The notes: a model not told the origin generated them from the letters alone. A DNA stretch of 64,000 nucleotides from Ascidiella aspersa (GCA_963924565.1 OZ004607.1:32984001-33048000), one strand, 5' to 3'; counted from the first letter of the stretch, positions 442 through 61,967 are shown. Made by a program: numbers and translations.

Positions 442-3400
442 CAATTTCACTGATTCGTATATTACGTTTCTTCCTCCTTTGTACGACGAAGACGTTTTCG
501 CTCACTTTCGACAGTCGATAGATTCCGTTCCTTTGCGACTGTTCGGTATTTTCTTCGAACTTGAGCGGATCTTTGAATGACGACCCACCCCAGCCAACAT
601 CGACAAACCATTGTGAGCCGTCATTGCACGTCGCCTGTTGAACACACGAAAGATTTAAGAAGAAGAAACATATTTTTTAAAAGTGGCCGTATTTGTCTAA
701 ATTAAATAAGGTAATCAGGTGGCACTATATAAAGATTCAATTGTCTTTATATAGTGTCAACTCATTACATTTTTGGTAATAATTGCTCATATACGTTTTT
801 TTTTCTGGAAACCCGTTTTGATAATTAAAAAAACGAGTTTTTTAGGTACACTATGCTCGTTTTTGCATTGTAGCCTGACAATGAATGTCGAAGCCAAAAA
901 TGTTAAGTAGATTGACGTCATCTGAATAAGGACGTTTCGATACGAACTTGTATCATCTTCAGTTAAATGGATGATGACGATTTCCTTCACACTTTTATCT
1001 TTGACGTTCATTATCATGTGACGTTTTTTATTTTTTTTTCATGTATTCGCGCTGAAAAAAAATATTATTTCAATGCTCTCATCATAAAAATCCGTCTTAT
1101 ATTTTTACTTTATTGATGCAGGAAATGAAGGTTTGTGTTTTGTTTGTAATCGCCAAAAAAACATAATACGCTTCTGCTAGAATATTACTATACACAGACT
1201 TCGGAGCGTTATTTTAAGGTGAATTATATAATGGTAAAGGTTAAAATAAATCTATATCTAGGGAAAAATCTATCAAATTTGTAGGCGCAAAGAGTTTCTA
1301 CACCTTTATGTAGAAGCTTCCTAAATAGTATTTGTATTGTGTAGGTATACGAGCATACCAGAAATACCGGCATACATTGTCAGCTAAATGCGTCTAGCAG
1401 TAATGAGAAAAGCACTGATTGCACCACACTCCGAAAACAGACACGCATTTCGTCATTGTTTTCGGTCTAATACTGACATTAAGCTGGTAATTTTAAACTT
1501 ATTGCGCCGTTTGTTTCGCTTTGTTGTTCAGTTAGTCACATCTGAAAGACGTTTACAGCGAGTTCATTTTCGCAGAGCTAACAACGCTGCTTTTCTTGCT
1601 TGCTCTATAAACATTAAGTTAATTATCAGCAAGCAATGTTGTTACATTGTAATATTATTAATGCTCACGTCGATTACTTAACGACATTTACGAATGACGT
1701 CCACGTTAAAGCTGTACCTGTGAATTAGCTGAGTTCATTTAAATATCTATTGTCAAACAGTATAATAATATAATGGTTCGAAACATATAAAATGATACCT
1801 ACTTCTGCATGAACGTTGTTATTCTTATTAAGAAACAATAGTCAATCGGAAAAATAAATCCATACCCTATTCTTGAGGCCAAAATGTTCACATTTTTGCC
1901 AAATGCGCACATGACGCGAATGTGCGCTTTATGTGAACCGAAGTGCACTTTATGTGTACCGAATGTGCACATCGGGCGAATGTGCACGGAAAGTGCATTT
2001 GTACTAGTTGTAGCACAGTAACAATCAACGTTTTTGGTTGGGGTACTCGGGCGCTGGTCTAGAATCCTACCAGAACCTGAAAACAATTATTAAAGGGCGC
2101 TGGTCTAGAATCCTACCACAGACCCGAAAACAATTATATATCATTGTGCGCACAACGTTTAAGTTTTGGTTTTGAGTCTTGTATCTATCTTTTCCAAAAT
2201 AAAGTAAAGCTTGAAACAGCGCTGTTAAATGCACAGGTTTTGACCTAGTTAATGACTTGGTAGGTCGTGTTTTACCTTTTATTAGACCACTGTTTCAAAC
2301 TTTTTGTTGCCCGGACAATCCTGGCGTTTTTGCTCCTTAACACTTATTGTTAGGCTGAAAAAAGTATTTAAATACTTCCGCAGATTTTACATAGGTCGAT
2401 TTAGTGTGGAAACGAGAGCACATAAATTACGGCAGCCGCGAAAATATTATTCTTGCGTTCATTTTCCTATAGAATAAGAGCAAAAAGCAGCTAAAGGCCC
2501 GTTTACAAGACAGCTGCACTCAGCCGAGCAAAGCGTAATTTGCGTTTAAATTCTATTGGTTTGAGCTTTTCACGCTTTGCTAACTCAAGCCCCGCGCAGC
2601 TGAAAAAACTGCTTTGGAGCGATTTTCACGCTTTGCCGAACTCACCGCAGCCGCAGATGTAGTGAATATGAGCCTTAAAGTACCACCGAAACAGCCTTCT
2701 CATGTTAAGCAGCAAAAGAAAATCCATGGTTGTTCTAGGCTAGAAAAGGTTTGAACCAATGGCCTAATAAAAGTAAACGTGACCTACTAAAGTCCATATC
2801 TAGGTCGAGCTGTTTCAGCTGTATTTTATTTTGTACCGCATACAGTGGCGTAGCCAGCCGAACATTTTGGGGGGGCCAAAAAGTTGGATTTTTTTGTTTA
2901 GCTTGTTAGCAAACCGTTTCGAGCAGCAACTGACTGAGTGTTAACGCAGTACTAAAAAAATAGTCAATGAGCAAAAACTGTCTAAAAGTAGTAAAACTAC
3001 ATTATTGTATAGAAAACGTTATATTGCGTTATCATTTCTCTTTTATTAGACTACATCGTTTGTGACGTAACAATGTTGACAACTGAAGGTGTGGCATGCT
3101 TGTGATCGACTGTTGTGGTACTTCTCATAAATGCTAAAGAAAACAAGTTATTAAGAGTAAAATGTTCATAAATTTTGGGGGGGGCATGGCCCCTCAGGCC
3201 CCCCCCCCCCTGGCTACGCCTATGACGGCATACCTTTGGTGGTTCGTGTAGCACAATTTAAAAAGCACTGTATTAAGCAAATGCTTTAACATAAGTGTTT
3301 TAAAACGTTAATTAATACCAACCAGCATCGCCATGTGATCGAACTCTGGGCTGAAACAATCCAGCTGTTTCACGTAAGCCTGAGCTTGGCATATTCTCAG

Positions 3401-3652
3401 TTCGAATCCAAACTTTTCCAGCAACCAGTGGAACAAGCCGTTTAGCTCGTAGCAAAATCCGCCGCGCTTGTTCAAAACGATATCGCGATAAACCTTCCGC
3501 AAATCCAGTCGTTTTCTTTCGCCACCGAACATGTCAATAGTGTCAAACGGAACTGTCCTTGATTGACATTCGCACAATTTTGCTAAAGTTGAAGGACTAG
3601 TGTCTCTAGGCCCACTGTAGCCGATTCTTTTAAGATAACTGTCGACATCCAT
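442..3652 (-). CDS. NAT: Arylamine N-acetyltransferase, copy A (exons 1-2; 3' exons lie beyond the window start)
   Basis: Exon 1 3652-3323 (MDVDSYLKRIGY...VPFDTID...RGGFCYELN...DHMAML, phase 0). Exon 2 634-442 (ATCNDGSQWFVDVGWGG...). GT/AG sites present and frame continuous. The Cys-His-Asp triad motifs GGFC, DH and VDVG are all present. Confidence 0.92.
2495..2675. mobile_element. Probable PIF/Harbinger-type MITE in NAT-A intron 1
   Basis: Imperfect terminal inverted repeats (aggcccgtttaca...tgaatatgagcct) flanked by TAA on both sides. Absent at the equivalent site in copy C (~42490). Confidence 0.6.
2843..3224. mobile_element. hAT-type MITE in NAT-A intron 1
   Basis: TIRs cagtggcgtagccag / ctggctacgcctatg. 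8-bp TSD accgcata/acggcata. Empty site in copy C (~42675). Confidence 0.8.
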
Positions 3653-4425
3653 TGCACCAATGTTGTGTAGCTGAAGTACCTTGCTAAGGTCTGCAATTTT
3701 TGTTTCGTAACTTTCTTTGAGTGGAACAACAAGCCAATGCGAGTTTAAACCGAAGTACAAAAGAGGTTCAATGTGGTGGAGAGAAGAAGGCAATCATATT
3801 TGTGCGGACCAATGGACTACAAATCCGCTTAATAAGAAGGTGTTGTCTGCAGTTCAATGTCATTGTATCGCTGCGACCTGTAAGCGTTTTGACTTGGTTG
3901 AACCAAACCTAATTAATGCCTCGCGTATAATGCTTTTTAACTAATTAATAGGCTTTTATCGATTGCATTGTTTAAAGCTTGACGTCGCTAAGCAAACTTG
4001 TACATAGGCATTGGTAAACAAACTAGCAGAGCCTTGCTTAAGCATGCACGGTAAACACCCCTTTAATTCAATTTTTCCAAAAAGTCGATAAAATACCCTG
4101 TAGTTTTCAAATGCCTTGGCCAACTCATATGTCAATCCAAGACTTCCCCGTTTAGCAAGCACTCAGTGCCTTGTTGGGGAAAAGTATGTATGAGTTTTGT
4201 TACCGATGGGCCTGTCACTGGTCAAATTACCCTTTATTCACATCATACTTGCCAGAAAATATCAGTTCGGCGTGACCGACGAAATCCGACAGACCGTAAA
4301 TTTCTGGAGCGACAGCATTGTCCTCGCCGTACACGGCGTACAGTTGTATAGGTTTGTACAGAAGCTATAGCCTACTGGCGCACCAAAAGTAGCAATATCG
4401 TTGCCGCACTTTGCAACCAGCTGCC
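3653..4425. promoter_or_regulatory. Putative bidirectional promoter between NAT (-) and the KDEL-protein gene (+)
   Basis: 773 bp separate the two divergent ATGs. Conserved in copy C (43098-43876). Contains a CRE-like TGACGTC at ~3980. Function is inferred. Confidence 0.55.
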
Positions 4426-61273: not shown

Positions 61274-61617
61274 TCGACTTATTTCACTGTTTGTGCTGTG
61301 TAGCGTACTTTTGTCGAGCGCGCCTATTAAAAGAATGTGAGTTGCCCTGAAAACCAATATCAGTGGTTCTTAATCTTTTCTAGCTGTGTTTCAAACAAGA
61401 AAGTTAACGTAAACTACTTTGCCCTGATTTTAAGCTGAATACGTCGTAAAGCTTCGGTTTAGATTTTAAGTTCTAGGTTTAGCAACTTATATCTCCCGAC
61501 TGTTCACATATTTGAGCCCCTCCTTGCTTGTACAAAAATTCTGGTTAGATAAGTTTTTGACAATAGGTTTACAATGTTGTATGCTTTATGCAGTAGGTTG
61601 GTAAATTTTAAGTCGAT

Positions 61618-61967
61618 TCATCGACCATAATTAAGGTCTTGAACAACCGCATCAAAGTCCAAAATTATGTCGAAGTGCTTCTTCAGCAAATCTTTCCACT
61701 CTTGATCGTTCGTTGCCGTCTCAACGCTCAAAACCTGCTCAGTGTTGGGTCCGATGAACATTTTGTCGGTAAATACCCGGCCCCACATAATTTTGCATCC
61801 GTCTTTGCGCTTCAAAATGCACACAGTGTTGTGCTTGAGAAAACTGGCGGCGTCGTCCTGCTGAAACGCGCAAGGATCGCTGTAATCGTCCAGTGTTCGC
61901 GACTCTAAGTCGAACCTGTAGAGAATTTCCCACTGCAAACTCTCGTCGTTATTCGTCGGTAAGTTAC
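61618..61967 (-). CDS. NAT: Terminal exon of a second arylamine N-acetyltransferase paralog (upstream exons probably beyond the window end)
   Basis: Phase-1 acceptor ttttggcag. WEILYRFDLESRTLDDYSDPCAFQQDDAASFLKHN...KDLLKKHFDI aligns with exons 3+4 of NAT-C. Confidence 0.85.

Follow-up and report, generated by a model that had tools for sequence, protein, structure and literature searches.

The 64,000-nucleotide stretch of the Ascidiella aspersa genome analysed here (GCA_963924565.1 OZ004607.1:32984001-33048000; hereafter the window, with positions counted from its first letter) carries three head-to-tail copies of a block of two genes: a single-exon gene whose protein ends in KDEL, and a 13-exon gene for a Gla-like/EGF protein. 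It seems likely, at a rough probability of 80%, that this array arose by a lineage-specific, two-step nested tandem segmental duplication within a small cluster of NAT genes, followed by exchange between the copies. An earlier sequence-only reading had seen in the same DNA a triplicated cassette in which the KDEL and Gla-EGF pair was selectively retained while the flanking enzymes, NAT and PPIB (cyclophilin B-like), were not, and had offered a functionally coupled module as one explanation and simple hitch-hiking as another. The junctions, now mapped at base resolution, favour hitch-hiking, as the gene content of each copy is set by the positions of the breakpoints and not by selective loss. 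The array is an ordinary lineage-specific duplication, with no sign of selective gene loss or of a functional module.

Results

Three tandem copies of a two-gene block

Self-BLAST of the window, together with a three-way MAFFT alignment, places the three copies in one orientation, copy A running from ~1.9 kb to the left of the window to 20902, copy B from 21083 to 36980, and copy C from 36983 to ~59098; the window is free of any N. A whole-genome search returned exactly these three array copies and, apart from them, one distant broken gene of the KDEL family. The KDEL-tailed gene lies on the + strand in each copy as a single exon that is open from ATG to TAA and ends in TKDEL, at 4426-6051 in A (541 amino acids), 21320-22837 in B (505 amino acids) and 43877-45394 in C (505 amino acids). 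The Gla-like/EGF gene follows on the same strand at 8759-19629 in A (13 exons, 480 codons), 25086-34393 in B and 47641-56659 in C, the latter two again with 13 exons, all intact. AG/GT splice sites, phases and open frames are kept in 13 of 13 exons in all three copies of this gene, and the sole change in exon length is the loss of 3 nt (one codon) from the Gla-like exon of copy C. Self-comparison, alignment and open frames all bear out the earlier claim of three tandem copies of the pair, intact each time.

The spacing between the two genes is 2.7 kb (in copy A, from the stop at 6051 to the start at 8759), and each gene has its own start and its own signal-like segment. Genes in ascidian operons are separated by short spacers, and the 2.7-kb interval does not match an operon layout.

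Junctions and the proposed order of events

Junction 1, at 36980/36983, joins intron 2 of PPIB to an upstream NAT gene on the + strand, NAT(+), which is entered midway through its last exon. The endpoints of the junction correspond to C 59098 on the PPIB side and to window position -1899 on the NAT(+) side, and the join is blunt, with 1-2 extra bases. On its left, homology pairs B 35800-36252 with C 58406-58868 and B 36796-36980 with C 58912-59098; in between, 3' of the PPIB fragment of copy B, there is a 545-bp insertion (36253-36797), which is followed by 185 bp of PPIB intron 2 (36796-36980). On its right, copy B from 36983 onward matches the last exon of the upstream NAT(+), starting mid-exon. 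A partial PPIB and a partial NAT(+) are found back to back within 35978-37218, and the whole genes stand at the outer ends of the array.

At junction 2 (20903-21082), the homology of copy A to B and C ends at 20902 and is followed by 180 unrelated bases. Copy B then starts at 21083, the point that equals A 4189 and C 43640 and lies ~240 bp upstream of the KDEL start codon, and just these ~240 bp of the original upstream region are present in front of its KDEL gene. Elsewhere in the genome the 180-bp insert occurs just once, at 97% identity, on another chromosome (G000:C7:28973148-28973324); because the 180 bases have this twin, junction 2 can be recognised as a non-homologous join with a copied insert. 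As the scar of a repair by copied insert, the 180 bp both mark the A/B duplication and date it. Four reads of DNA run X8 and one X1 contig have loose ends at 21083; an alternative haplotype was considered for these and rejected, as their letters continue as at the C7 locus and they come from the twin of the insert.

The divergence between the copies is uneven. A and B are 93-99.6% alike throughout, and after A 14024 both are 72-87% alike to C; from EGF3 onward, the number of synonymous substitutions per site (dS) is 0.063 for A-B and 0.26-0.31 for A/B-C. To the left of ~A 3228, A and C are again just 80-91% alike. Bounded by these two points is a homogenised tract of ~11 kb (A 3228-14024, equal to C 42675 to ~50160) that covers the KDEL gene and the spacer, with NAT exon 1 on one side and the Gla-EGF exons as far as EGF2 on the other, and within which the copies are 90-99% alike and show mosaic site patterns. 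C-private sites make up 4 of 100 before A 14025, just 3' of the EGF2 exon, and jump there to 20 of 98, and from that point onward the pattern is one of A and B together versus C. A-private sites dominate at 7785-9364. Further differences between copies A and B are an intron insertion of 2.9 kb, a repeat insertion of 420 bp, the expansion of a minisatellite and two 18-residue repeats.

From this map we infer a history of two duplications and later exchange. In the older step, ~21 kb would have been duplicated head to tail, starting midway through the last exon of the upstream NAT(+) and ending in PPIB intron 2, with NAT(-), the KDEL gene and the Gla-like/EGF gene lying between the cut NAT(+) and the cut PPIB. 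The outcome would have been a whole NAT(+) on the left, a whole PPIB on the right, and a fusion of the PPIB 5' part with the NAT(+) 3' part at the junction; the PPIB remnant in copy B would never have been complete, because the breakpoint cut PPIB in intron 2. In the younger step, ~16.7 kb of the left unit, from ~240 bp upstream of the KDEL start to ~1.3 kb past the Gla-EGF stop, would have been reduplicated and joined by way of the 180-bp insert copied from another chromosome. Of the two resulting copies, only A would have NAT and only B the PPIB fragment. Gene conversion or unequal exchange would later have homogenised the ~11 kb among all three copies.

Under this history no later loss is required, because the second duplication excluded NAT and the PPIB fragment, and the "selective retention" proposed earlier dissolves into the positions of two breakpoints, one that cut PPIB in intron 2 and one that left both NAT and the PPIB fragment outside. 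The KDEL and Gla-EGF genes would have travelled together because they are 2.7 kb apart and duplications of 14-22 kb usually take both.

Both genes are constrained in every copy

The KDEL and Gla-EGF genes are under purifying selection in all copies, and both would appear to be functional. The ratio of nonsynonymous to synonymous rates (dN/dS) is 0.16-0.26 for the KDEL gene and 0.15-0.22 for the Gla-EGF exons once the Gla-like exon and EGF4 are set aside, and EGF4 compared with C gives 0.06-0.09. For the mature Gla-like part (A 9596-9724, B 25865-25993 and C 48418-48543, all on the + strand), dN/dS between copies is 1.06-1.70, on small counts, and its ratio of amino-acid-changing to silent differences is distinct from that of the other exons (Fisher p=0.002 for B-C and 0.04 for A-B). 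In total variability, the Gla-like part does not exceed the introns on either side of it (21/126 versus 83/718 sites, p=0.11).

The KDEL-tailed protein

KDEL forms the final four residues of the protein in all three copies and all 3 Cys lie in a hydrophobic N-terminal segment, read by eye; on these features the protein is a putative soluble resident of the endoplasmic reticulum (ER). It contains six to eight 18-residue (54-bp) amphipathic repeats, about eight of them in copy A, the units of which have a strong hydrophobic moment at 100 degrees. After the repeats, the protein is helical with Pro spaced by 14, 28 or 42 residues. Its net charge is divided, at +15 to +16 for the first 150 mature residues and -16 to -18 for the remainder, and a structure model is all-helix at low confidence (pLDDT 41.3). 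The proline content of 4.6-4.8% is ordinary and the protein is not Pro-rich, as had been supposed; the associated idea of a Pro-rich protein accompanied by its isomerase fails on composition.

A word-indexed search with residues 150-505 found no relatives, a metagenome scan produced 394 pattern matches of which 0 were confirmed, and an Atlas search gave no usable match. A full HMMER search returned 63 matches at E<=0.001, 3 at E<=1e-10 and 0 at E<=1e-30, nearly all of them on the repeats. We rejected these as homologues, as the 8 of the 63 that were inspected (5 were Pfam-scanned) are unrelated K/E/A/V-rich repeat proteins (Kelch, DUF2341 and others). The Pfam family DUF948 scores 37.4-41.2 bits against a cut-off of 37.2 and is taken to be a composition effect, sitting as it does among 31-44 weak coiled-coil-type matches. 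The KDEL-tailed protein is, by these searches, an apparent orphan without detectable relatives.

The sole other member of the family in the genome, a fourth KDEL-family gene on the - strand at G000:C1:3456598-3457906, is 29.5 Mb from the array. It lacks the signal segment, neatly removed so that the repeat region begins right after MF, and also the KDEL tail; its frame is shifted once, where ~35 nt are deleted. Compared with copy C, dN/dS is 0.13-0.33 at a dS of 0.42-0.63, and this gene may be a former cytosolic paralogue that has recently died. A search of 50 kb around it, reaching 30 kb to one side and 18 kb to the other, found no Gla or EGF exon. Because this constrained member has no Gla/EGF neighbour, it appears that the KDEL family has existed unlinked to Gla-EGF.

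The Gla-like/EGF gene

The exon series of copy A, all on the + strand, begins with a signal exon (8759-8855) and a propeptide plus Gla-like exon (9540-9724), followed by a 25-nt exon between the Gla-like exon and EGF1 that is identical in sequence across all three copies (A 11265-11289, B 26666-26690, C 49058-49082). There are then four exons for EGF1-4 (13101-13217, 13907-14017, 14655-14768, 15400-15513), four for EGF5-8 (16028-16141, 16224-16337, 17187-17300, 17994-18107), and two short EGF-like exons (18821-18928, 19514-19629). Each of the three copies has 8 exons with the six-Cys EGF pattern, and the calcium-binding EGF family PF07645 scored 34.2 bits versus a cut-off of 27 in the one exon open reading frame that was scanned. 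The propeptide cleavage site reads RPKS in copy B and RPKR in A and C.

The Gla family itself, PF00594, matches copy B at 16.6 bits (E 0.0087), under its gathering cut-off of 27, and there is no match at E<=1 in copies A and C. When a three-exon Gla-like profile was compared with solved structures, all five matches at E<=10 were vitamin K-dependent propeptide plus Gla chains, namely factor IX (two sequences), factor X, prothrombin and PRRG2, although the best E was only 0.086; a single-sequence search gave E 1.6. In the structure alignments, both the C-x4-C pair and the VFL...A...L spacing of the propeptide are preserved. One carboxylase-like HTTM (PF05090) gene is present in the genome, with five collinear exon matches on C3:708265-710873, all above the cut-off. 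Judging from its sequence features, we are fairly confident in describing the second gene of the block as Gla-like and in predicting that its product is probably carboxylated.

Reads and expression

Reads were mapped on 19400-25399 at 97% likeness; DNA run X8 was sampled at ~1 in 100, with coverage of ~3-15 fold. With three true copies the depth ratio should be 3 and 33% of reads should have B letters; the corresponding values for a haplotype artefact are 4 and 25%. The X8 depth is ~3.4 on the flank of A and 10.8 on the near-identical 3' part of the KDEL gene, a ratio of 3.2 obtained without a single-copy control. At 12 B-private sites, 32 of 94 reads (34%) have the letters of copy B, and at 5 of the 12 sites none of the reads does. 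An X1 contig (record 3, 20830-20965) spans 20902/20903 with 0 differences; X1 may be the source sample. The read data lean toward three copies without settling the copy number.

RNA run X9 (7.8 million records read, from one sample with tissue unspecified) yielded 5 reads on the 6 kb, with 0 on KDEL copy B and 0 on exon 1 of Gla-EGF copy B; the only X9 reads with real depth are at 20200-20399, inside or beside a dispersed repeat. Separately, one third of the sampled words of 19400-25399 are present in the marine metagenome run X3, suggesting that the animal's DNA is present in environmental samples.

Neighbouring genes and repeats

The NAT(-) gene of copy A is represented in the window by exon 1 (3278-3652, - strand), the N-terminal part with the GGFCYE catalytic-Cys region (Pfam PF00797, 87.7 bits). 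Using the exons of copy C, tblastn places its exon 2 within 377-706 and its exons 3-4 to the left of the window at ~-636..-337 and -955..-773, all on the - strand. In copy C, NAT(-) spans 37899-43097 on the - strand, with four open exon pieces within 42735-43097, 39400-39735, 38392-38790 and 37899-38102. The last exon of NAT2(-) is at 61621-61974 (- strand), and its likely N-terminal exon is to the right of the window at ~69474-69805 in window count. The PF00797 scores for the NATs of the window are 87.7, 93.0 and 47.4 bits, with a cut-off of 22.8. The earlier count of NAT as present twice holds for NAT(-), in A and C, but the family is larger: a complete NAT(+) gene lies 1.6-3.5 kb to the left of the window, a NAT(+) 3' fragment that runs from about residue 30 of the last exon onward is at 36982-37218 (+ strand), and a NAT N-terminal exon is found ~5.5 kb to the right of the window.

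PPIB is whole only in copy C, as had been noted, at 58593-61273 on the + strand. This single complete copy has a signal-like start at 58593, read by eye, and ends in HSEL, a sequence treated as a KDEL-like tail in passages of two papers (PMC1462989, PMC13324453). Its exon pieces lie within 58730-58900, 59292-59408, 60341-60616 and 61118-61270, and Pfam PF00160 scores above cut-off on three of them, which are collinear at profile positions 2-35, 34-60 and 67-131. Copy B has a PPIB 5' fragment at 35978-36257 (+ strand) that consists of exons 1-2 only, with a frameshift in exon 2; no trace was seen of PPIB exons 3-5 in copy B or of any PPIB exon in copy A. The "pseudogene" once assigned to copy B does exist as a frameshifted remnant, but one of exons 1-2 that was never a complete gene. 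A second cyclophilin exon, 75% identical to the PPIB-like exon of the window, is at G000:C1:40923243-40923437.

The description of the KDEL gene, the Gla-EGF gene and PPIB as three co-oriented genes of secretory-pathway type is supported by their hydrophobic N-termini (by eye), by the KDEL and HSEL tails, and by the propeptide and Gla-like exon of the second gene.

A 33-bp minisatellite of 15.3 units occupies 7498-8003, in the KDEL-to-Gla-EGF spacer of copy A only; no array reaching a score of 150 was found within 21000-47200, covering the B and C spacers. X8 reads show a step back of 33 bp at 24316/24284, the matching place in copy B, and the spacer minisatellite is probably length-polymorphic. 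A dispersed repeat of ~420 bp (19857-20273) in the 3' flank of copy A is absent from B and occurs at least 40 more times across the genome, at 67-80% identity.

Discussion

Several observations weigh against the nested duplication as we have reconstructed it. The mosaic pattern within the homogenised tract requires several exchange events; read support for junction 2 is weak, and the reads on the 180-bp insert may derive from C7; the depth of ~3.4 on the flank of A is about half of that expected from 1936 million letters over 308.6 Mb, and a heterozygous structure predicts the same; and a 1731-letter X2 contig (record 9) follows the A flank over 19551-20901 with 28 differences and then continues for 379 letters off the stretch. 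The departure of this contig at 20901, where the homology of A to B and C ends, could represent a structural variant or a diverged allele. Furthermore, the same map is predicted if the whole unit had been triplicated by unequal crossing-over and ~8.7 kb, comprising NAT(-), the PPIB fragment and the NAT(+) fragment, had then been deleted between A and B. The 3' half of B is A-like and parts of its 5' half are nearer to C, as in a crossover hybrid, and a copied insert can repair a deletion as well as a duplication. However, such a history needs two events where one is enough, no remnant of the deleted material is seen beside the 180-bp insert, and we consider it unlikely; even then, the loss would have been of one NAT and two dead fragments, which is still no sign of selection on the pair. 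It is less probable again that A and B are haplotypes of one locus that were placed in tandem by the assembler, the true state being two copies. Sea squirts are highly heterozygous, A and B differ by merely 1-7%, and A ends after Gla-EGF and B begins before KDEL in the manner of overlapping contig ends; the halved depth on the flank of A and the 5 of 12 sites at which no reads have the B-private letters fit this as well. Nevertheless, the join contains neither N nor gap, an insert copied from another chromosome is unlike a haplotig overlap, and the X1 contig, if with the caveat about its source, crosses 20902/20903 without a difference. The depth ratio and the share of B-private letters lie nearer to the values expected for three copies than to those for a haplotype artefact, and the insertions, minisatellite and 18-residue repeats that distinguish A from B also argue against it.

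The possibility that the pair is a functional module, with the KDEL protein acting as an ER factor for the Gla-like/EGF client or as a partner of the cyclophilin, and with selection holding the pair linked and amplified as the flanking enzymes were dropped, is one to which we give little credence. Its attractions are that both genes are intact and constrained in all three copies, that the homogenised tract takes in the whole KDEL gene along with the N-terminal (Gla-like) part of its neighbour, that there is a carboxylase-like HTTM gene in the genome, and that the unlinked family member has no signal peptide, KDEL tail or intact frame; the dN/dS of the Gla-like part would suit a diversifying client. 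It is perhaps tempting to picture a lineage-specific ER factor/client pair in which co-amplification and concerted evolution of the KDEL and propeptide-Gla segments were selected while the mature Gla-like surface diversified, but this, too, is improbable. The breakpoints alone account for the gene content, the homogenised tract is not specific to the pair as it includes NAT exon 1, the proline content is unexceptional, and the unlinked paralogue has been constrained in a setting where the 50 kb searched held no Gla/EGF exon. Neither KDEL copy B nor exon 1 of Gla-EGF is covered by X9 reads, and the spacing is unlike that of an operon.

What the array provides is a clean, base-resolved example of a nested tandem duplication, complete with junction fragments, a copied insert and a sharply bounded 11-kb conversion tract, and an illustration of how breakpoints can imitate "selective retention". 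Still of interest in their own right are the orphan KDEL-tailed protein and the protease-less Gla-like/EGF gene with the exon layout of a clotting factor.

Truncated gene fragments at the junction of a tandem segmental duplication are a textbook pattern, and nothing essential differs here. The copies are head to tail, the genes cut by a breakpoint are whole only at the outer ends with their complementary fragments meeting at the junction, and a nested second event, a non-homologous join with a short insert and the later gene conversion of a part all have their textbook counterparts; the homogenised tract, at ~11 kb, is long, and it has a sharp end just after an exon. The KDEL protein, with its tandem 18-residue amphipathic helices, the Pro residues between them and its all-helix prediction, is reminiscent of exchangeable apolipoproteins and LEA-like proteins. 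This is a functional resemblance only, as there is no sequence relationship, the KDEL tail sets the protein apart, and the structure model is of low confidence.

Among ascidian proteins, Ciona 'Gla3' is described in a passage of PMC8149874 as a transmembrane Gla protein with multiple EGF domains. The array gene shares with the ascidian Gla proteins a signal peptide, the VFL...A...L propeptide, a short Gla-like exon, a run of EGF domains and a carboxylase-like gene in the same genome; it differs in having neither a transmembrane segment nor a protease, in a Gla-like part that is under the Pfam threshold, and in being a three-copy array. The comparison with vertebrates is one of gene structure. 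The F7, F9, F10 and PROC genes are laid out as a signal exon, a propeptide plus Gla exon, a 25-nt exon and phase-1 EGF exons. Although the array gene lacks serine-protease exons and has ten exons of EGF type where those genes have two, its exon order, its phases (1, 0, 1, 1...) and its 25-nt third exon are like those of the vertebrate clotting-factor genes.

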